Positions 1 through 62,249 of a DNA stretch of 64,000 bases are shown one piece after another (position 1 is the stretch's first letter; each line of letters starts with the position of its first letter). The position numbers were made by a program, and so were the translations under genes. Source of the stretch: Vitrella brassicaformis CCMP3155 (taxonomy: Eukaryota; Protista; Chromerida); assembly GCA_001179505.1 (NCBI GenBank), contig CDMY01000395.1, positions 332,119-396,118 of the forward strand. Direction: 5' to 3'. The notes beneath the pieces were generated by a model. That model was not told the origin of the DNA. It did not search any database and saw nothing but the letters and a program-made list of their open reading frames with translations.

Positions 1-178
1 CAGGCGCCCCCCCTCTCGCTCTCTACCCCCCTCTCTTCTCTCAGAGTGGCCCCGCCCCGAGGATCAAAGGGATCTTCAGCCCCTCTGGCACGACCTCAGA
101 CTCCCTAGTAGACACACATACACACACAGAATCATACACTCACTCACAGTGCTGGCTGTGTCGGTGTGGGTCTCGCGT

Positions 179-2709
179 CTACCAGACGTAGGTGAACTTG
201 CCGACGGTGATGGAGTACAGAAATAGCCTGTCGCCCAGGTCGTCGATGAAGTCAAAGCCCAGTCCAAAGTCCTCCGTTTCGACCTCCGCAGATCCCTGTG
301 GGATGCCGTCGCCGCCCACACCGGCGCCCACTTGGACGTACGTGACGCCCAGGACGCCGAAGCCGACCTGGATGAACACCTCTGTGTTGGCTGGATCGGG
401 GAAGTCGCCTAGAACACACGCACGCACGCGCACACGCAAACGGGACAGAGCCAGGTGGATAGACCAGACGACTCGTCCATTCCTTACCATTGAGAACCAA
501 CTGGTATCCGTCGCCCCAGTTCCCTGCAGACCACGGATACTCACATGTGTCGGGTTTCTGGGTGCGTGGCGCATCCCCTACCCTGGAAGTCAGTCTCTCT
601 CTCGTCGAAGTCCCGCAGCACGGAGAATTGATATCCCAGAACGCCGACGCTGACGGCGTATTCGGTGTCCTGAACATCTTGCCCCACTGCCACCGCCACC
701 GACTTGTAGCCCGCAAACACCTCCGTGGCAAGCTCCTCATCGTCATCTGTCGTCGGGTCATCGAAGTCGTTGAAGTCGTGCCTTCGGGTGGACGATGAGA
801 GGACGGATCGAGTATGAAGTGCATGAGAATTGTTAGTGTCTGCTGATGTCTGACCTGACGGCGACCTCGGTGTTCCTGACTTTGACGCGCTGCCCGTAGT
901 CTCTGTCCAGGATGTCGACGTTGGTGCCCGTCTCAACGCCCCTCGCCACCACCTCGACCGCTGTCTGACGGTCGTCGGCGTCTTGGTCAACCTGATCGAG
1001 GAAACAGACGACACCAAGGGATGATGAATGGCCTCTCTCCTTACCTCCCCCCGTCCATCGATGTGTTTTTCTACTTACTCGGACACTGTATGCCCCGTAC
1101 GCGACGCCCGCCCCCGCCTCGGCGTCACTCTCGTCCGACGAATACGAGATCGCGAACTTGCCCACTCCCGCATTCACGCTGACCTCCCGCTCCTTCTTGC
1201 CGACCCCCACGCCGACGAATGCCAAATCGTTGCCGACCTGCACTGCAGTGTCGCCGCCGGCCTCGATGTCTCTCCCCCATTGAACGCTCCAGTTGTCGTA
1301 GACAATCTCGTTGGACACCTCGGTGATGAGGGTCTGAGTGCCGGCACGTGCCCATGGGTTCTGCGCCACGGTTCCGAGAGCAGTAGGGAGAAGACCTTGG
1401 CCTTCCACCTCCCCGCTGGTCGGCAGCGACGTGACGACTGCGGGCTTCTGTACTGCTCCCGCGTCTGTGTCATTCCATGTCTGTAGCCTCCTCCTTCTCT
1501 TGAGGGCGGTCTTGCTGAAGCGGCATTGCTCATCCACGGAAGTCTTCTGGGCGAAGGCCGTCATCATGCACTGGACCTTGATGCTGTCATGGCCGTGGAG
1601 AGACATCGGCTTCATCGAGAAGACGATCCTGCCGGGGTCTTGCACGCGCACACGGAAGTCCAGCTCGTCGCTGACAGGGCAGCCATTGACGACCAGATGG
1701 TGGACGCAGGCAGGGTCGGTGCTCTGATAGCCTTCGGGACAGAGGGCGTCACACAGCATGGGCCAGGGGTGGAAATCGCTCCCGACGACGCTCGACTCAA
1801 ACACAAAGGAGCTGACACATACACACACACAAAGAGTCACGCTGCCAAATGGAAGTTGTGTGAAGGATTGCAGACCCTCACGCTTACTCGTCGTCGTTGG
1901 GGATGTGGATCGTCATATTCTCGCCTGCCAAAAGGCCGCTGGAGAGCATGTGCCCCTGGGCTACAGCCTTCATCTCGGTGGCCAGCGTTTTGTTGCCGTC
2001 GAAGGCAATCAGCGCCTGTGTGCTGCTCTCCCACCTGGCCGTTGGGTGGCACTGACCGGTCTCCTTGTGGCACGCACAAGTGACGACGGCATTGTTACTC
2101 GCACCATACACGCGGAGCACCTGCACACAAACGACAGACACAGGCAATCGCAGGTAGGTCATTTCCACAAACTACAGGCAGGCTGTTCTCACTCACGTTC
2201 GTGTGGTAGACATATCGGTCGCTTTCGCTTGTCGCCATCCCGCACTTCCCCGGCCAAGCAGAGAAGTCCACAGATGCGATCAGTGCATGCGCAGGGGAGA
2301 AGAAGTCCTCAGCAAAGGTGGCGCCACAATCGGGGTCAGCAGTGCTGTTGCGGAAGCCCCCTCGCCGGGCGCCTGAGAGAGCCGGGTCGCTCGCGACGGC
2401 CACAGCGGCGGTCATGCGCTTGTCGGTGCACCAGGCGACGGGAGGGAATCCCTTGGGAACACCCTTTTTCTTCAGCCAGTCAGAAACAGACCACTTCTCC
2501 GTTTTGCCTTTCCCCGCCTCCTTCTCGGCTGCCGTCGGTTGTCGCCCATCAGGATGTGCAGAAGCAGCCTCCACAGCCCCCTTGTCGAGCCGCCGCGCTC
2601 CTGTTGCCGTTGCTGGAGGAGACTCGTCGTTTCCTCGGTCGCTGTATGCGTAGCTTCGGGCGTGGACGGAGATGAGCAGCGACACGGCGACGAAGGGCAG
2701 ATAGTGCAT
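179..2709 (-). CDS. Secreted protein: signal peptide + ZP (zona pellucida)-like module + furin-type site + beta-strand-rich acidic C-terminal domain; 7 exons
   Basis: Signal peptide MHYLPFVAVSLLISVHA. Phase-compatible GT-AG exons (2709-2197, 2120-1888, 1811-1079, then four smaller ones) end at FTYVW-stop. ZP-like Cys motifs VAWCTDKRMT, DPDCG, GKCGM, VVTCAC, LCDA, VVNGCP, KVQC, EQC are followed by KRRRR. Confidence 0.8.
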
Positions 2710-3188
2710 GACATTGACGGTGAGTGAGGGGCCGAAAAGGGGCGGGGATGGCAGATGTGTACGGGATCGACGCTCCTCAAGAGTTTACCTTTGGCCAAGA
2801 TTTTGCTGAGTTGTCCCGGCGTAGCGAAAAGAATTAAGACAATAGGGGGTGCGCGAAGCGTCAAGACTGGAATAATGTGTTGCGCGTTCAGTGCGTTCAT
2901 CACCATGGCCATAAAAGCCCGACACGGAGAAAGGACGTGTGTTGTCACTGCAAGAGCCAAAACGGTGCAGTACACACTCCCCCCACTCCCTCCTTCCTTC
3001 CCCCTTGATCACAATGACTGACTACCCCCATTTCATTCAAAAAGCCTTCCTTATTCCACACAAAAACAACACAGGGACCAAGACACTTACATGAATCAGA
3101 GATGCAAACGAGACCAGGACATAAACCGCCAACTAGAAAAGGCAGGCCGACGGACGTCCCATTGTATGTCTGTCAGACTCTGTCTGCA

Positions 3189-5099
3189 TTACAGCTCCGC
3201 CTTGGTGGGCTTGTCTTTTGTGGTGGTGCCGCCCTTGCTGAGGCGATCGAGGGCAGAGAAGGCGAGATATGGATGGAGGGCGGCTGAAACAAACAACACA
3301 GAATGGAATTTCATGCACCGACCTGAAGTGCTCACATTGCCCACTGACCTCCGATGTCCAGCACTCGCTCGTCGAGGGCGAACTCGGGATTGTGGACAGA
3401 CACCGAAGTAGACGGCTGGCCATAAATGCCCTTGCCGTCACTGCACACGCTCATGGATACACACAGCACACCATAGGAATCATCCTGTGGACGTCCCCTG
3501 CGCACTCACGCGTGTCCCAGCAGCACGAACAGGGCAGGGACGGCCTCGGTGAAGAAAGAGAAATCCTGCACTCATCGAATCCATGGATCGATGTGAAACC
3601 ACCGGGGATGGCTGGTGGCCGTCTGTGCGTCTGTGTGTGTGTGCGCCCCTCCCTCCCAACCTCTCCGCCCATCGTGGGAGGGACCTCAGTGACAGACAGG
3701 GGGAAGTCCAGGAGGCCGGCAGGCAGCGAATCGCTGGCCTCGGACATCACCTGGCAGGCACACACACAGCAAGTGCACGAAGTGTCTGTCAGTGTGTCGT
3801 CACGCATCCCATCCTTTGTGTCCTGTCCTACCTCAGTGAACATGGTCCACATGTCGTTATCGTTGAGGGTGGGCGGCGCAAAGTCCTTGAGGTACGTCAC
3901 TGCATCAAGATGTTTTAACACACCATTACGCACGGATGAGATGGTCTCTGTGGGGCTGTGTGTGTGCACGAGGTGTACGAGGTCACCTGTCGCATTGAGG
4001 CGGTTTGCCTGAGCGATCGACTCGGACATCGACCGTATCCGCTCACGCAGCTCCAGGACAGCCGCCGATGAAAGCGTGCGGAATGTGCCTGCGTGTGTGG
4101 AAAAGATGGAGGGCCACACGGTCATGTGCAGTGTGTGCGCTGCGCTGGGGGTGGGGGCGGGGGCGATGTGCAGAGACGCACCTTTGAGCATAGCCCAGTC
4201 AGGAATGACGTTGTTGGCATCTGAATCTGTCTGCACACACACACACACGCAATGATGGAGACCCCTCCCCTCAGCTGTGTGGATGTCGCCTACACGCAGG
4301 ACGGTGACCGACACCACTTTAGACTCTATGGGGTCCGTATCTCGCGACACCAGGGTCTGCAGTGCCAGTGCCAGCTGAGCAGCCCCTGGGACGGGGTCAA
4401 TCGCCAAGTGAGGCATCGCAGCGTGGCCGCCAACCCCTTGCAGCTTGATATCAAAGCTGCCATCAACACGCAACAGAAATGATGAATGAACGATCTACCG
4501 CAGCAGTTGTGTGCTGTGTGTGTGACGCTACAAGTCTCCGGCAGCCAGGAGGGGGCCCCCACGGCCACCCAACGTGCCAGTGGGAAGCTTGGGCCACACG
4601 TGGAAGCCGAAGATCTGCTGCACAGGTGGGTACTGCGTCAAGACGCCCTGTGTGCGTATTGATTGACAAACACACAATCCGCACAGACATTCAGGGAAAC
4701 CTTATGCGGTGGGTGAGCGTCGGCACACCTCTTCTCGCATCATCAGTGCCCCAGGGCCGCCCTCCTCTGCACCCACCCACCCACACACACACACAAGCAA
4801 GACACATTCGCAAAGACGTGTTGGTGGATATGCACTGCACCGATCCAGTCCCTCACCTGCAGGCTGAAAGATCAACCTAATCGTGCCCTACAACGAGACA
4901 GGCAGACAGACAGGGAGAGAGTGTCTGTCGTATCGACCTGATGTCTAGCTTGCGCCTTTGCGGACCTGAATGTCCTTCTCCCTCTCTTTGAGGAGCTTGG
5001 CTGCTGCGAGCAGCATCGTCGTGTGGGCGTCGTGGCCACACGCGTGCCTGACAGACACGGACAGACAGACAGACAGACAGGCAGACGGACGGACGGACG

Positions 5100-27998: not shown

Positions 27999-28420
27999 TC
28001 AAGAAGTCGCAGTCTGAATGTCTGACCCACTCTTTCTCTCGTAAGTGTTGCAATACGGAGAGCGAGACAAAACGCCGATAGACTCTTTACCGCAGGTTCG
28101 TGTCGTCAGTGTATTCATCTTGTTGTCTGAGAGCCAAACCAAGTCAAGTTCGTATATTCCAAGACGACAGACATAGTTCTTCTGGTTCATCTCAAGAACA
28201 CTGCACGCAGTTTGCTCAAAGACGCACAAGGCGCATTGCTCGTCTGACACGGCCGCTATGAAAAACAGACACTCATCTGAACTCATGTGTATTCACGGAA
28301 AGTAGCTAACACTCAGTCGGTTAGAAGTAGCACTACACAAGCAGCTGGGTCTACTATATACTTGCACATGGATGAAATTGGTTTAACTACGGTCTCGAAA
28401 TGAGCGCTAAGTATTTCTAC
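27999..28420 (-). CDS. Cys-rich exon set of unclear affiliation (separate small gene or tail of the upstream membrane protein)
   Basis: Exon AVSDEQCALCVFEQTACS...TRTC is flanked by ag/gt; terminal DIQTATS-stop. The 5' end is not resolved. Confidence 0.3.
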
Positions 28421-28429
28421 TGACAGAAA

Positions 28430-31400
28430 CTGCACTGCGAAAAACAGAAGAAGTACAGTGACTAGCAAGTCTGTTCCGATGCCTTTGAGGCGACCTCGTC
28501 CTCCTGCAGTCCACAACCAGACATCGATTCGCAGTCTGATTCAAGCATGTGCCAACAGTCTACCTCTCCTCGAAATCGGCGTTCGTATTCTTGAACATTT
28601 CCAGCAGCTGCTGTGCTTGAATGTCTCTCTCGGGAAGAATGCGCAGGACGGAGATGGCATCGATGACTTCTCTTCTCAGCCAAGGGAAGAGACGGTAGTG
28701 AGCAAACAAACAAGCCAAAACCAGAAGAGACCATGCAAGCGCCCCCAGGATCCACAGCTGCATTGAAGTGCAGACAAAGACACAATACACTATGTGCAAT
28801 CAAGTGTGGTTTGTCACTTATTTACTTTCGTCTCATGTGCGAGGAGGTCCGCATCAGCCTCCTACACGAAGAAACATGGAGAAGCTGGTCAATCCCACGG
28901 ATGCTTACTCTCTCACCTCCATGAAGAGGTCTTCAAACTTCTCAAAACCTAAATGGATTACATGGAGATGAATAAACACTCCCGACTCTCAGCTTTGTCT
29001 CACCCCCCGAAAGGTCGTAATGCAAGCTGTTTTCCAAAAACCTACACCACATATCAAGATGACGAGAGCCGAGTCATACTCGGAAATCGCACGCCTCTCT
29101 TGCTTACCAGTAGTCAGGCGGCTCGTTTGCCGTCATTCGATTCATCACTGGAAGGGTGCCATTCGCCTCATTGCCAGCTATCTCCAATCGCCGAGTATGA
29201 GCAGTCACCGCGTAGTATGATGGCGGTGTACCGTTCCCATGCAGCCAGTTTCGATGAAAGCGCTCGGCCTCTTCGAACCTGAAAAGTGCACAAATATACG
29301 CCGGCAATCCGCAATCAATGCGGCTAGTCAGGCTCGGCTCGGCGCTTCGCGCCTCGCCTCCGCAGACAGGCCAGGTGATCAGTGCCTTGTATAGTCCCTG
29401 CTCCATCAAGTCAGAGAAAGGATATGGGTGGACTCTGTTTGAGCACGTTCCCTCCTGCAGGACAGGAAAGAAACGAATCGTCATAGAAGGCGCGCGAGCC
29501 CGTCAGTCACTCAATGAACCGACCGATTTAGGCAGGAGACAAGAAGGAAAATAGAGCAATCTGAGACAGTACGAGTGCCATTAGATAAGGAGCATTCTCT
29601 ATGTCGGCACAATCACTGTCTCTCACTTTTTCCGTGCTGAGAAACGACGATCCACGGGCTCTTCAGCCATGTCCTGATGGTACAGAAGACTGCCCAGCTC
29701 ACTCCTTGCCTCGTGAATGTCATGCTGAAAGGTAAGCCATACATCAACAGAGACGACAGAGAAAACAGAGAGAACGGCCGCTGATGCGTGCAGCTGATGA
29801 AAGACATGCCTCGATTTCCGCAGCAAAGCCTCCGCCCGAAGAATCTCTTCTGTTCGCCGATCGCCAAGGAAATAGATCTTTCTCCACCAAGTGCAGAGCG
29901 ACAACCCCGGCTTGACGGAGCCTGCACAGAACACGGCAGATGATCAGGATGAGTTGACGCTCATCTCAGCGGCACGCACCTAAACTCAACCATCGTAGCC
30001 TAAGAAGAGACACGGACAGCTAATGTTACATCCTGAGGGGAAGCAGATGGTAGTGTTCTGCCTCACCTTGACCACCTCGTCGGTCAGGTTGTGCGACATT
30101 GTCATCAGCACGGCCTGCAGGAGACCCACGATGGGAACAAGCTTGTCATGGAGATAATAAAGCGCATGCACGCCGACCATGAATGTGTATGTGAAGACGC
30201 TGTAAGCCAGGATGCTTCCCATGAAGAAAAAGAGAGTCCTCGAAAAACGCCCTCTTATGCACACGTTAAGCCATCGGATGATGTTTGGCGGCTCTCTGAG
30301 CGGAACGGCAATGAGACAGCAGTGAGTGACTGTGAAGCACATTTCTACCTGAGCCAGCGATGTCTGACTTTGAAGAGAAGCCATCTCCGATGACATGTGA
30401 ACCAGCCTTTGTTCCGATCGATTCCGCTGCTGTCGATGGATCCGCGATGTGATCCATGCCGCCTGTCGGCCCTGTCGCAGTGATGTATTGAGAAAATATC
30501 ACATTCGTTGGTTCAATACCGCTTCTTTCTCTTTACGAGCTGGCTTGGTTGGGGCCGAATTTCCTGGACTCCTCCCCAGCAGTCATTGGAGCAGTAGCAT
30601 CTCCGCCCTTTTTCAAGCTGCTGTCGCTCGCACGCCGTTGCTAACCAGAGAGGGGACCAGCAATGTGTTCATCGAAGAAAGAACTAGTACTTTCGCATTG
30701 CGTACTTTCTTTGTTGCCTCGCTTCTTTTCTGCAGCAACTCAAAAGCTCTTTGTCTTTCGCTTTCATGTCGTTATCCTGAACTCCTTTACGCTCGAGGGG
30801 CGGATTGGCATCACTCGCAGCACTGATGGCAAAGCAACAAAACGCAGAGTCGCCTGCGAATAGAAACGAAAAGTGGCGGGAGCGCTAACTTCTGTTGTGG
30901 CTGGTGCTGCTGTCTTGTCCCAATGTCCTTGCTGCCATCAGCTGGCTGCAAGTATATCAGAGTCGTATTCGTTCCTTCTGGATGCTTCGAATTGATATTT
31001 CTGCTTACTGCTTCCAGTTTGAGAATTGCCGAAACCGTCTGCTCTGACACGTGATTCCACTGCTGCTCGTCTGCCAGTCCATCCATGTCATTTTGGTGGT
31101 CCTCAATGTGCAAGTGGGCACCACGTGGGCCGCTCTCAGAAATGTCAACTGTGTAATCCGTCCGATCCGTCCGATACGTGGGCGTCTTATGCAGTGTCCC
31201 TCCTTTTGGCGACTTCACAGCCTCCATCTTCCCCGAGCTGTCGCTGTCTCCGCCGTCTGCCTTGGAGGTAACACAATCGATCTGCACCACGAGCTCTCCT
31301 GTCTTCTGACGGACGAGACCGTGTTTTGAGACCATCGAGTTGCCGCTCGCGTCATGCAGAGAACCTTTGCGTCGCAGAAGAGCTGAGACATGCACCCAAC

Positions 31401-34400
31401 ATAATGGGTAAGCTGTGGCTGCGGCCCCGATAGACCTGACCTGGGTCTCGGTGCTGCTTACCGAGGGCGTGCAATGCTCGCTTGTCTAGTGGCAGGCTTG
31501 ATGGCACTTCAGACTTCTCCGTCGGATTTTCGCTCTCGGCCATTTCACTTTCACGTTTCGCCAAGAGGCCCTCCTTTCGAGTTTACCTGTGGCCCAACGC
31601 CACATGCACAGTGGATCCACACATTTGTAAAAAGTGTACGCTCGATGTGTGTGTATTAAAGTGTACGCTCGATGTCCTCAAGATTGATCATTGACAGTGG
31701 GATGATAATCTTCCCATCTTCGGATATCTGAGGCGAGGACTGCACAGATTTGTTGTTCGGAGGAAGGGGCCTCTCAATGACTTGTCGTAGGCGCGATCGT
31801 CCAAGGCACCAGAAGAGCCTTGATGCAAAATAGATCGCGGCTGCAAGGCCGGCGAAATGACTCGTACATGTGGGTGGGCGCCTTTTGATTTGTCCGCCGG
31901 GGCAGTGGAGGCATCTCGATCACCTTTGCCATGGCTGGCGGTGAGCAGCGGTGGAGTGCCAGTGGATTTGAGGGCGGGCTTGGCGGGCGATCGACCTTTC
32001 TCTGTCTTCAGCTGGTCTCTCGCTTCATCTTCTTCCTCCTCGATATCGAAGCCGTCCTTCTGAAGGGACACCCTGCTTCCCCACTTTGAGAGGACAGGCT
32101 TTTTCTGCCTGCAGAAAGACTGGAGACATTGATGGCGATAGATATACTGCTGTTTCTCACTCGTCGGCCTTTTCGCTGTGTCTATGCGTGGCGGCATGCG
32201 GGTCGACAGCTGTGTCGACCAAGCAAATGCCCCGTCGCGTCTCCCTTCCGAAACGCTTCCGCAGTCTCAGCTTCTGCACAAGAATAAACACCACGTCGTC
32301 TTCCACTCTTGGAGGCTCGAATCGTACTTGTCTGTGGGTTAGCTTGAAGGCAATGTGCAAAGCAAGGCCGACATCGCTTAGCATATCAAACTCGCCGGCT
32401 CCCTTTTGGACCATGCGCAGGATCACTGATCCAGCGACAGGATGCACACGTCTTTAGTTGTCAGAGGAGATGGGTCTTGACTTACCAAAGCATGAGGTGA
32501 TGTTGACGCTAAGGGTCACGATGATGCATGCCAAGATGACCATCTCTGATTCTGATCAAACGCACAAGACACGAGAACCAGACGATCGATAGCGATGTCC
32601 CGGACCCCTCCCTCACCCTCGACGATGTGCCAAATGTGGTCGAGTTCGAGCTGAATGGCAGATTGGCACATCACATAGTCCGGCGCAACGCGCGTGTGTG
32701 GCTCTCACCTCGATAATGTGCACGCCAACCTCTCCTCCGTCACCTATACAGTTTTGCAACACCAGCTTGAAATTCGGCGACTCAATTGCTGCCCTCTCGT
32801 CAATGATCTCGCGGATCGCTTGCAGATACTCCGCTACTTGAAATTTAAGCGTCTAGTAATGAGGGAGGGTATGATGCAAACAGGAGATGGAGGGACATGA
32901 AGTTGTGAGCATGTTGTCACCGTCACCGTGCTTCTTGCATGAGCCCGTCGACAATGTCTCACCTTAAAATACGTCACCCCGTTGTCATTGAAGAATGTTG
33001 TCCGAATCGTCGGCTCTCGGTAGAATCTCTGGACCTCATCCATGTTCTCTTGGATGGATTTGTCAACAATAAAGCTGACAACGTCACCACACAGACAGAG
33101 CGTGTCCAAAACAGAGGTAGCTATTGATTTCTTTTACCAGATCCGCCTACTTCGAGGCATGATTGATCTCTTTGACGAACTTGTCCATGGTTTGCAGCTG
33201 TTTTGTGATGCGCATTTCGTTGTGTGTGCTTGCGAGACTGCGTCTCTCATCGGTAAGGTTGCGAGAGTAGATCTGGACTGATGTGATTGCATTGCAGACC
33301 TCGGTCCTGAAAGACGATGCGACATCACATGTGCTCAAGACCAGCTCCCCTTGTGTTCTGTACCAATCATTGATGAGCACCCGATTGTAATGGAGGTCGT
33401 GCATTTTCTGCGGGCAGGCACACAACGCATAAGTCACAGAAGGTCTGAAAGCCACTCGTGTTAGTACTTGCGTGGTGTATTCCATCTCATTTTTCTGCAC
33501 CTGAGGACATACCCACACACACGACGAGAACGCATATATACCGATACTCTGCATGATGGGTTGCAGTGTGCCAGCGAGGCGAGAAGGCCAACGTACAAAG
33601 TGCGTCACAATGCCCATGACCACCATAATGGCCAGCCCTGAGAGAGAAGAGACACGAGGTCCAGCATATCGACAACTCGACCTTGAGCTCTTGCTGTGAG
33701 CATGCCGTACAGACCAATGATTGCAACAGCCTCCGTCAGATGGAGTCTCCTCTTTTTGCTCAACTCGATTATCTTAATGTGTTCCTCCTTGCTGCTTCCT
33801 GTGCACAGATCCGATCACACGAGCAACATCGATCCCCCGTTTGTGTGAGCGTTCGATATCTTGCCTCCTTCATTTGCCCCATATCCAGCCCCGCCGCCGC
33901 TGTTGCTGCTGCTCTCAAGGGTCGGGTCCTGAGAGAGAATGGCAGATGACTGGTCATCGGCCTCCGCTTGGAGCAACAACAACTCGGCCCTGGTCGTGTG
34001 GAGGAAGATGCGCCAAGCGATTGCTTACCCGGCCCCTGTGGATACATTGCTCACCTGGATTCATCATTATAGAGCTGCCGCACAAAGTTCGCGAACAGCT
34101 CGAGTGCCTAGTCACACAACCGAGGAAGGTGAAGACACACAAACGATCGGCTCGCCATGAGTGCCGTCATCTCCTCTGTCCGTCTCTACGTCTTTGCTGC
34201 GTGGAAAGCGGCGCAAGAGGTTGACGTAGCTGTGATGTGCATTCGACACAGCTTCAAGGGCCTGTCTTCGACAGAGGCAGGCCAGGTGGATCGATCCATC
34301 AGGAGCTCGTGTCTCACCTCGCGTAACATCGCTGCCCTCTGTCTTGTTGGCTTTGCCGAGGCCATCTTGCTTTCTGTCGCCAGAGCACGCCAGAACCTGG

Positions 34401-59741: not shown

Positions 59742-61312
59742 GTGGCGATGTCAACAACTCAGACAACAACAACAACGGTGATGGTGACAACACAGCCAAC
59801 AGCGCCCTCGATGAACTCTCATCAGAGCAACGCCTCCCCCCTCCCCCTCCCCAAACCGTCGTCATCGCACAACGCCACCTCCCCCGACGGAGGCAGCACC
59901 TGCAGCAGCAGCGGGAGCAGCACCACCCACAAGGGGCACAACTTCATCCCGAAGAAGGCCATCCTTGGGCACAAGAGCAGCTCCTACAACCTTGGGAAGC
60001 TCCCCCCGCCGCGCAAGAGTCTCCTGACCCAGTGCATCTACCTCCTCAGCAACCTGTTTGCGACGGTCGTCACCCTGATGGCCTCGGTGATGCTGCTCTT
60101 CGCGCTATCGCACGCGGCGCACGTGCTCGAGGACGCCTCGACGTACCTGGCGGTGGTGTGCCCCGTGACGTCCTTTTTGCTCTTCTTCTCTCCGTTCGGT
60201 GTGGTCAAGACGGCCATCAGCAAGAACTCGGCTGAGGCGCTGCCCGTGAAGCTGTTTGTGGTGCAGAGTCTGGCCAACCTGCTGGCCATCGACTATGGGC
60301 TGAAGGTGCAGAACCTTCCGGTCGTCGTCACTAACACCATCGGTGAGAGGGAGGGGAGGTGACCGTGGCCGAATCATCGTGTATGTGATGTGTTTGGGAT
60401 GGCAGGTGTGTTGCTGCAAGTGACGTGGCTGTCGAGCCACCACTACATCACCAGGAGGAACTCACGATGGCACAGATTCGCACTCTCTATCGCCCTCGGT
60501 ACGATTACCCCGTCGCACCCTCACACCCTCCCCCTTTCCACCCCCGAATACACACATACATGGATGCCTGTCTGCATCTTTTCCTCTCCGCGGTTGGTTG
60601 GGTCAGGTGTGGGTGTGGTATTCTACATGTGTTCGTTTGCGGACGAGAGGATAGTCGGGGTGGGTGTGTTCGTCGCCAACTTCATGCTCTTCGGCACACC
60701 TGTGCTGCAGCTGGTGAGCAGGGAGGAGAGAGGAAAGAAGAGCCGTTACATGACGAAACACACACGAGGGTACGTCTGTGCGTCTTTCTTGTAGGGCGAG
60801 GTGTTGGCAACGCGCAAGTCCGACGGCATCCCGTTCGCCATCTCCCTTGCCATGGTCATCACCAACGCCTGCTGGAGTGTGTATGGGCTGCTCGTCGAAG
60901 ATGTTGTCCTCTGGCTGCCATCCGTTCTCGGTAGGCAGGGAAAAACCCTGCACACCACATTCCTGACATGGATGGATGGATGGATGTCAGGTTATCTGCT
61001 GTCGGTGTTCCAGCTGCTGATCATAGCGTGGTGTCACTCGTACCTCCCGTTCGACATCACGTTCCTTGCTCTCGTCTTCCCATCGCCAAAGGACACAAGC
61101 GGCGACAAGACACCCAAACAAGTGCTCGTGAAGGCACTGCCGCCGGTACGTTCCACACACGGTCACCCAGCACACAGCCGGGCAGGCTTCCTCTCCTTGT
61201 CTCTCTCTCTCTCTCTCTCTGTGTGTGTGAGTGTGTGTGTGTGTGTGGTGTTCAGGCTACCATGCTGAAGCGCTTTGCTGAGCACGAGAGGGATCAGGTC
61301 AACGAGCCATGA
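59742..61312 (+). CDS. SWEET (MtN3/saliva) sugar transporter with Ser/Thr-rich N-extension
   Basis: Two MtN3 repeats: FLLFFSPFGVVKTAISKNSAEALP..YGL...VVVTNTIG and MLFGTPVLQL|GEVLATRKSDGIPFAISL...CWSVYGLLVEDVVLWLPSVLG. Confidence 0.93.
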
Positions 61313-61674
61313 TGGGGGCAAGGATGGATGGAGGGAGGGAGGGGCGGCACGGCTGGAAGCCCACATGCACTTCGTTCATTCATTCATCCACTCGTTCATT
61401 TGTTCTAATGTACATATCATCATATCGACCCACAAGCAGACAGACAGACACACAAGATGGCAATGTGAGATTCCACTAGATGCGACTGTCCCTTGGCTTT
61501 TTTCCTGCTTTGCTGTATAGGCGAGAGAGGGAGGGAGAGAGAGGGAGAGAGAGAGATGGCATACGACTGCTTTTTCACTATCATGATGACCACTACCTAT
61601 GGATGGCTCCATCCCTGTGTGTGTGTGTGTGTATTTGGATGGGCACAGAGACAGAGACAGGGGGGGGGGGGGGG

Positions 61675-61974
61675 NNNNNNNNNNNNNNNNNNNNNNNNNN
61701 NNNNNNNNNNNNNNNNNNNNNNNNNNNNNNNNNNNNNNNNNNNNNNNNNNNNNNNNNNNNNNNNNNNNNNNNNNNNNNNNNNNNNNNNNNNNNNNNNNNN
61801 NNNNNNNNNNNNNNNNNNNNNNNNNNNNNNNNNNNNNNNNNNNNNNNNNNNNNNNNNNNNNNNNNNNNNNNNNNNNNNNNNNNNNNNNNNNNNNNNNNNN
61901 NNNNNNNNNNNNNNNNNNNNNNNNNNNNNNNNNNNNNNNNNNNNNNNNNNNNNNNNNNNNNNNNNNNNNNNNNN
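61675..61974. other. Assembly gap (300 N) next to a G homopolymer
   Basis: Run of n preceded by about 15 G. Confidence 1.
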
Positions 61975-62249
61975 GGGGGTCGAGTGCGTATGTGTGTGCG
62001 TGTTTTGGCCACCAAAGGGTGCGGCCGCCGATCGATCGACATGGTGGATGGATGGATGGATGACGCCCCGCCTATGAGAACTACATAGACAGATGTTTTC
62101 GATGTGTCTGTGTCTGTGTGTATCTAATGGTGTGTGTGTGTGTGTGTTTTGACCCTCATGTGCGCGTGGTGAGAGGACGCGACCAATCATCCGCCACGGA
62201 ACGAATGGTCAACCGTTATTTCTCTCACACGAACGTACACACACACACA

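Follow-up and report, generated by a model that had tools for sequence, protein, structure and literature searches.

A predicted zona pellucida module joined to a 24-strand beta domain in an expressed protein of Vitrella brassicaformis

The canonical zona pellucida (ZP) module, with its ZP-N and ZP-C domains, was described in a 2026 review as a metazoan synapomorphy, choanoflagellates having only incomplete 'ZP-like' domains (PMC13361971). Among the described systems closest to the one reported here, uromodulin (UMOD, Tamm-Horsfall; PDB 6zya, 6tqk and 4wrn) carries an external hydrophobic patch (EHP) and a glycosylphosphatidylinositol (GPI) anchor, whereas the TGF-beta co-receptors endoglin (5hzv) and betaglycan (ZP-C, 3qw9 and 4ajv) have a transmembrane (TM) helix and no functional cleavage-site/EHP system; in the ZP3/ZP1 precursors (3nk3/3nk4, 8bqu and 8rki) the module is followed by a furin-type site. 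Here we describe a gene found in a 64,000-nucleotide stretch of the genome of Vitrella brassicaformis CCMP3155 (contig CDMY01000395.1, positions 332,119–396,118; this whole stretch is called the window, and position 1 is its first letter), an alveolate of the Colpodellida clade and a relative of malaria parasites. The gene and all of its features given below lie on the minus strand, and its product appears to hold both ZP domains followed by a large C-terminal domain of 24 beta-strands. The best explanation of the locus, which we consider probable, is an expressed and secreted multidomain ZP protein belonging to an ancestral family, with processing and assembly that may resemble those of uromodulin and ZP3.

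The assignment of the ZP fold, which we hold to be highly probable, comes mainly from a structural model. The module (amino acids (aa) 86–362) was predicted with AlphaFold2, with no templates and from an alignment (A3) of 12 alveolate-only sequences, as two all-beta (beta-sandwich) domains with a predicted local distance difference test score (pLDDT) of 78.3 and a predicted template modelling score of 0.75. In a Foldseek search of the PDB, the 26 best matches were all ZP modules (E 2.7e-9 to 4e-3, probability 1.00), and the chain alignments spanned approximately 260–297 columns with both domains in order. These matches comprise uromodulin in its filament and precursor forms, which is the best two-domain match (E 2.7e-9), ZP3 and the ZP3/ZP1 filament (whole-module E 7e-8 to 2e-6) and endoglin, with GP2 and betaglycan ZP-C appearing later; endoglin and betaglycan are matched at fold level (E 1.3e-5, Z 5.9–8.2). 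The first non-ZP folds, staphylococcal MSCRAMMs and IgE-Fc, were found at E 9e-3 or weaker and with a probability below 0.35, which leaves approximately six orders of magnitude between them and the best ZP match. Similarly, ZP proteins of mammals/vertebrates, coral and C. elegans accounted for 30 of the 30 matches listed among the Swiss-Prot models, and all ten rows of an ESM Atlas shape search were PF00100 clusters. Superposition with VIA-align placed model residues 3–107 on uromodulin 329–431 (ZP-N) with Z 8.8, as compared with Z ≤5.1 for Ig-Fc domains, and model residues ~134–271 on the ZP-C domains of ZP3, betaglycan, ZP2 and GP2 with Z 5.6–6.5. The ZP3/ZP1 chain 8bqu_A reached Z 9.8 over 216 residues and, in a wide VIA search, ZP-C was superposed on 28yj_A with Z 9.2 and a root-mean-square deviation (rmsd) of 3.2 Å over 112 residues.

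Two further lines of evidence do not depend on the model. Language-model features, which are structure-free, scored 0.93 against ZP-N/CUT_N clusters for aa 86–210 (183 shared features, above the stated lead threshold) and 0.83 against ZP-C clusters for exon 3, which encodes most of ZP-C; ten of the ten best matches of exon 3 were ZP, a result to be taken as a lead only. A hidden Markov model (HMM) of the family, when compared with 177,635 distinct PDB sequences, gave a single match, a uromodulin chain (E 0.055), in which C269...NGC293P...FS...C330 was aligned with the canonical ZP-C pattern C...GCP...FS...C. A first-pass annotation, made from the DNA letters, had proposed a divergent but true ZP-N plus ZP-C module and had suggested structure prediction with Foldseek as a check. 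The prediction bears this out, in that two immunoglobulin (Ig)-like beta-sandwiches were obtained, the structural matches are ZP-specific and the transcripts described below leave the cysteine pattern intact.

The same annotation had listed a series of motifs, all of which are present in the minus-strand translation and in the order claimed. From the N-terminus they are VAWCTDKRMTAAVAV (aa 91–105), DPDCG (125–129), VDFSAWPGKCGM (147–158), RYVYHTN|VLRV (165–175), VVTCAC (183–188), LLAGENMTIHI (234–244), LCDALCP (268–274), HHLVVNGCPVSDE (286–298), GRIVFSMKPMSL (309–320), SIKVQC (325–330), EQC (343–345) and KRRRRLQ (353–359), and the span assigned to them, 1487–2436, corresponds to A92..R357. Upstream, where a signal peptide had been noted, a signal-peptide-like N-terminus with a hydrophobic h-region is found (aa 1–17, MHYLPFVAVSLLISVHA; 2659–2709), separated from the ZP module by a charged, acidic low-complexity spacer. 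Plastid targeting was considered and is unlikely, given this acidic spacer after the signal. The polybasic furin-type site KRRRR (aa 353–357; 1487–1501) was, like the signal-like segment, read directly from the translation; it starts 8 residues past the last ZP cysteine, C345, and [KR]RRRL is kept in five Vitrella paralogues (P0019, P0020, P0021, P0018 and P0001). The predicted order of the whole protein would be signal peptide, charged spacer, ZP module, KRRRR, a disordered spacer with KPAV...GEVEGQ, the 24-strand beta domain and a tail.

Within the module, ZP-N (aa ~90–192; 2058–2442, split by the intron at 2121–2196) was delimited by superposition, Atlas features and cysteine spacing, the interdomain linker (aa 193–218; 1980–2057) by alignments A1 and A3 and by the pLDDT profile, and ZP-C (aa ~219–352; 1502–1979, split by the intron at 1812–1887) by structural matches and by the family-profile alignment to uromodulin. 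The module has 12 cysteines, and N-glycosylation sequons are present. In ZP-N, C94 (C1), C128 (C2), C156 (C3) and C186 (C4) are spaced 34/28/30, with C188 as an extra cysteine; in ZP-C, C269 (C5), C293 in NGCP (C6), C330 (C7) and C345 (C8) are spaced 24/37/15, with C273 and C284 as extras. The uromodulin spacings are 31/23/36 and 21/39/16, and the order and spacing of the eight Vitrella cysteines are, judged from sequence, close to those of a canonical ZP module. C5, C6 and C7 align with uromodulin cysteines in the HMM alignment, C1 and C4 fit the VIA superposition ranges, and all eight are conserved in the alignments of the family. The additional pairs C188–C195 and C273–C284, which differ from the Ca–Cb pair of uromodulin, would form two extra bridges; both C273 and C284 are gone in the Selenidium sequence P0014, and the sequences are weakly consistent with a pairing of these two residues with each other. 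In ZP modules the eight cysteines are paired C1–C4 and C2–C3 in ZP-N and C5–C7 and C6–C8 (or in the type II pattern) in ZP-C. The linker contains the family-invariant C195 in the motif C-x-P-T-A-x-W-E, followed by a low-confidence stretch, and the conservation of this motif exceeds that of most of ZP-N; as an invariant sequence element it fits a structural role for the linker. In the model, an internal hydrophobic patch could plausibly be formed by the first ZP-C strand (aa 224–230), the glycines G227 and G237 being invariant.

Compared with uromodulin, the Vitrella protein thus shares eight comparably spaced cysteines and, a few positions past C8, a basic cleavage site, but the identity is 12–15% (9–18% for animal ZP modules in general), the Pfam ZP models miss the Vitrella protein, and EGF or D8C domains like those of UMOD are lacking upstream. 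In place of the EHP and GPI anchor of uromodulin it has the disordered spacer, a domain of approximately 280 aa with 24 strands and a conserved tail. The precursor logic of ZP3/ZP1, a module and then a furin-type site, is alike, whereas the ZP3-specific ZP-C subdomain and the TM helix are absent and the host is unicellular, with no egg coat. The polybasic site also sets the protein apart from endoglin and betaglycan. The ZP-like domains of the choanoflagellate Salpingoeca rosetta are likewise non-animal, but by their published description they are incomplete, whereas the Vitrella protein, from Alveolata, appears to hold both domains and the eight cysteines (PMC13361971).

The gene is real, well expressed and conserved, and not a chance pattern, since related proteins were found by phmmer. 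It consists of eight exons (2709–2197, 2120–1888, 1811–1079, 991–855, 781–582, 523–488, 408–183 and 104–44, with the stop codon at 43–41), the coding sequence running from 2709 to 44 and specifying a product of 713 aa. Public sequencing runs were compared with window positions 1–3300. Runs X5 and X6 contain transcript contigs from which all seven introns have been spliced out (7/7 joints), namely introns 1 and 2 (2196–2121 and 1887–1812, 76 nt each) and introns 3–7 (1078–992, 854–782, 581–524, 487–409 and 182–105), each of them GT..AG for the gene (CT..AC on the plus strand); introns are retained in the genomic contigs of X1, and genomic contigs of X1 and X4 are collinear with the window. The spliced translation is 100% identical to a 713-aa database protein of V. 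brassicaformis CCMP3155 (P0019), named 'unnamed protein product [Vitrella brassicaformis CCMP3155]' at source and 'ZP domain-containing protein' in UniRef, the latter label presumably coming from another profile (PROSITE). The first-pass annotation had joined three exons and had recommended that the junctions be confirmed by RNA sequencing: its joints are those of the X5/X6 transcripts, including the one across intron 1 that assembles RYVYHTN|VLRV, but the gene does not end after exon 3, as it has eight exons and continues for 356 residues past KRRRR.

At the 3' end of the coding region, splicing of intron 7 (105–182) is seen in X5 and X6 (joint 104/183), so that the apparent stop after ...TYVW is gone and 20 residues are added; the real C-terminus is ...TYVW-ESEVVPEGLKIPLILGAGPL, and the protein therefore does not end on an aromatic residue. 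The transcript reaches at least position 2748 on the 5' side and passes position 1 on the 3' side. One transcript contig (X5 record 14) runs approximately 600 nt past window position 1, which places either the 3' untranslated region or a neighbouring transcript fused by the assembler outside the window. Two (CA)n/(TG)n microsatellites are located in introns, at 110–131 (intron 7) and 1815–1835 (intron 2), where genomic contigs from short reads are interrupted or cross-match, leaving loose ends in X1 and X4. A tblastn search of the window for tandem paralogues returned the gene itself as the sole match. Upstream lies a multi-exon, housekeeping-type gene, also on the minus strand (3454–4473), with a peptidase M20 dimerisation domain (PF07687, E 1.3e-4). 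The GC content is 0.48–0.52 at window positions 28000–34000 and 60000–62000 and approximately 0.59 elsewhere in the window.

Past the polybasic site, the segment KPAV...GE[VI]EGQ is conserved among the Vitrella paralogues, at 15–35 residues from the site in this protein and at approximately 50–70 in some of the others. It coincides with the possible EHP of the first-pass annotation (aa 368–387, AVQKPAVVTSLPTSGEVEGQ; 1397–1456): the conservation among paralogues speaks for the segment, but the region is modelled as disordered and for that reason the EHP is a candidate only. The C-terminal beta domain (aa 413 to about 693–696; 183–1321, its last codon being completed at 104) was recognised by AlphaFold2, with pLDDT mostly 80–92, and by strand analysis, in which it consists of 24 amphipathic beta-strands of approximately 8 residues each with strictly alternating turns of 2 and 4 residues. 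Every strand has one hydrophobic face, D and E together make up 20% of the residues, and of all parts of the family the domain has the highest conservation (phmmer down to E 1e-185). In some relatives (P0007, P0011 and P0023) it occurs with no ZP module detected. Its best structural matches are outer-membrane barrels of 22–26 strands, namely MtrB (6r2q, Z 11.5), LptD (5iv8, Z 10.0) and PapC/FimD (2vqi/3ohn, Z 9.6–9.9), with which it shares an antiparallel meander of ~24 strands over approximately 235–255 residues; TonB-dependent receptors, VDAC, Tom40 and SAM-complex chains are matched as well. However, the rmsd to the outer-membrane barrels is 6.7–10 Å with no sequence-family match, and the Vitrella domain differs from them in having very short turns on both sides and in being very acidic. 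Flat single-layer sheets (OspA variants, CPAP G-box and MORN) score nearly as high, and a closed C-terminal barrel is for this reason a candidate only. No Pfam model, the Omp85 and porin models included, matched this domain in any family member scanned, and its Atlas features reach 0.69 at most. The domain is followed by a conserved tail (aa 694–713, ESEVVPEGLKIPLILGAGPL; 44–103), encoded by exon 8 after the intron at 105–182, whose motif W-E-S-x-V-V-P-D-N-L-x-I-P-L-I-L-G is kept from Vitrella to Selenidium, Rhytidocystis and Alphamonas and is disordered in the model. The beta domain and the tail together occupy the place of a TM or GPI anchor.

An exhaustive phmmer search with exon 3 found 17 related cluster-representative proteins, eight of them at E ≤1e-10; a word-indexed homology search with the same query returned nothing, and its repetition with a 16-sequence family alignment added no members. 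The genome of Vitrella holds at least seven paralogues (P0019, P0001, P0018, P0020, P0003, P0031 and P0023), and other members are from Piridium sociabile, Alphamonas edax, Rhytidocystis pertsovi, Selenidium pygospionis and S. serpulae, with further ones in gregarine-type transcriptome sets and environmental contigs. The whole ZP-plus-beta architecture is also present in two AlphaFold-DB cluster representatives, A0A023B6M6 (E 1.6e-31) and A0A1J4ME39 (E 2.9e-21), which, by their accession ranges, are probably proteins of Gregarina and Cryptosporidium; A0A1J4ME39 has been auto-named 'Bacterial surface antigen (D15) domain-containing protein'. The search for protist relatives and the phylogeny that the first-pass annotation had called for have thus yielded a family in other myzozoans and a tree congruent with their taxonomy: when the C-terminal domain was analysed by maximum likelihood, the chrompodellid sequences grouped in one clade (support 89/91), apart from a gregarine/Rhytidocystis clade (98/99), and the Vitrella copies form a lineage-specific expansion. 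The ancestor shared by chrompodellids and apicomplexans would already have had the family, which in Vitrella would have expanded to at least seven copies.

If uromodulin and ZP3 are taken as guides, the protein would be directed into the secretory pathway, where the module would be oxidised to six disulfides, and the C-terminal part, possibly membrane-associated, would keep the precursor polymerisation-incompetent. A subtilisin- or kexin-like protease would then cleave at KRRRR, the freed ZP modules would polymerise head-to-tail via the linker and the ZP-N/ZP-C interfaces, and the resulting filaments may form a coat or wall outside the cell, such as that of coccoid cells, sporangia or cysts. 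Cleavage and polymerisation are proposed here tentatively, as an analogy that we find possible but would place somewhat short of probable, and the wall- or coat-building role is one that we infer purely from the animal proteins.

A number of results weigh against the ZP protein reading set out above, either against its fold or against its mode of action, and have to be considered together with the alternatives. As to the fold, the match to the Pfam ZP profile PF00100 that the first-pass annotation had anticipated was not obtained: the Pfam ZP models (PF00100, PF23344, CUT_N/C and VERL_C) matched neither the six exon translations nor the protein or module (E ≤10), nor nine relatives (E ≤1) or 21 family sequences (alignment A4), and Pfam scans of the same exons, protein, module and relatives gave no other informative family, so that the similarity is mainly at the level of fold. 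A profile of ZP-N only had no match among PDB sequences, and one of ZP-C only gave E 0.33, weaker than that of the whole module. Whole-module TM-scores are approximately 0.3, with approximately 0.58–0.60 per domain, the low overall values being due to a different relative orientation of the two domains, which in animal ZP proteins, too, is not the same in the precursor as in the filament. Together with the shallow alignment of 12 sequences behind the model, the blank curated profiles and the 9–18% identity to animal ZP modules could be read as signs of a lineage-specific pair of cysteine-rich Ig-like sandwiches with no homology to ZP, the resemblance being convergent or a bias of the predictor, and Ig-Fc domains do match the first domain at Z ~5. 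We consider this improbable, as ZP-N and ZP-C are both matched in the right order and with a wide E-value gap to other Ig-like folds, the eight cysteines are canonically spaced with a GCP motif and a furin-type site following, the family profile matched uromodulin alone among PDB sequences, and did so at the canonical ZP-C motif, and the structure-free language-model search gave 0.93 for ZP-N. Very improbable, in our view, is a beta-barrel of the Omp85/usher/LptD kind that resides in the outer membrane of the plastid or mitochondrion and whose N-terminal domains merely resemble ZP. The structural matches of the 24-strand domain, VDAC, Tom40 and SAM-complex chains included, and the D15 name of one AlphaFold-DB relative would suit such a protein, but Omp85/porin Pfam models match no member, single-layer sheets (OspA, CPAP G-box and MORN) match nearly as well as barrels, an N-terminus like a plain signal peptide, followed by an acidic charged spacer, does not resemble a transit peptide, and a cysteine-rich module with N-glycosylation sequons suits the secretory pathway. 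Finally, the isolation of Vitrella from coral, and the occurrence of a coral ZP protein in the list of structural matches, might raise the suspicion that the gene is an animal contaminant or was recently acquired from an animal, such as a coral host, by horizontal transfer; this is effectively refuted. The first-pass annotation had argued against contamination from the host-style introns, and its argument is borne out by the seven short introns of host type with their spliced transcripts, by at least seven paralogues in the genome and by relatives in at least six other myzozoan taxa with a taxon-congruent tree. The spread of the family over chrompodellids and early-branching apicomplexans makes either event unlikely, and the 9–18% animal identity, the host-type introns and the location on a contig of approximately 396 kb with ordinary genes, beside one for an M20-type peptidase, make them untenable.

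As to the mode of action, the main rival is a true ZP-fold surface protein, a receptor or adhesin which does not polymerise and remains joined to its beta domain, the polybasic stretch being unused or serving some other processing. Some animal ZP modules, those of endoglin and betaglycan, do not polymerise; both are among the structural matches, and the ZP fold need not imply filaments. Furthermore, aa 357–409 have a pLDDT below 50 and no EHP strand is docked on ZP-C in the longer model, the polybasic site is missing or displaced in the relatives P0003, P0002, P0006 and P0014, and the best-conserved part of the family is the C-terminal domain. An anchor of the animal type is not apparent either: hydropathy revealed no alpha-helical TM segment, the top 19-residue Kyte–Doolittle window (1.59) being the predicted beta-hairpin at aa 628–646, and the IPLILGAGPL at the end of the tail, besides being part of the conserved motif, falls short of the length of a typical GPI signal, so that the idea of a GPI or TM anchor was rejected on tail conservation and hydropathy. 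Nevertheless, we regard a non-polymerising protein as unlikely, because the best structural matches are polymerising ZP proteins (uromodulin, ZP3/ZP1 and GP2), the distance of KRRRR from C8 is canonical and the site is kept in five paralogues, and the linker has an invariant C-x-PTA-x-WE throughout the family, as would be expected for a structural role like that in the uromodulin filament.

No description of a ZP module in Vitrella, Apicomplexa or Cryptosporidium was found in full-text literature searches that combined these names with ZP terms, and in a looser search over Chromera, dinoflagellates, gregarines and alveolates the ZP term was absent among the matches listed. As the UniRef label already reads 'ZP domain-containing', the locus is a further, architecture-specific case and not a first sighting; what it adds is a distinct architecture for a non-animal ZP module, with a 24-strand beta domain in place of a TM or GPI anchor. 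In its most far-reaching form, which we consider doubtful, the proposal would be that the ZP polymerisation module did not originate in animals, that it was complete with its convertase site in the apicomplexan/chrompodellid ancestor, through either a far older eukaryotic inheritance or an ancient holozoan exchange, that it was coupled to a previously undescribed 24-strand barrel-like propeptide instead of a TM/GPI anchor, and that its cleaved form builds the filamentous matrix of sporangial walls in algae and of cyst or oocyst coats in parasites. If true, a complete ZP module in alveolates would move the origin of this polymerisation device far outside the animals, the alternative being an ancient inter-kingdom transfer. 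The replacement of the anchor by a large beta domain would offer a natural variant for testing how ZP precursors avoid polymerising. For chromerids and gregarines, and perhaps for Cryptosporidium, whose walls and coats are poorly understood, the family would also bring forward a candidate structural protein.

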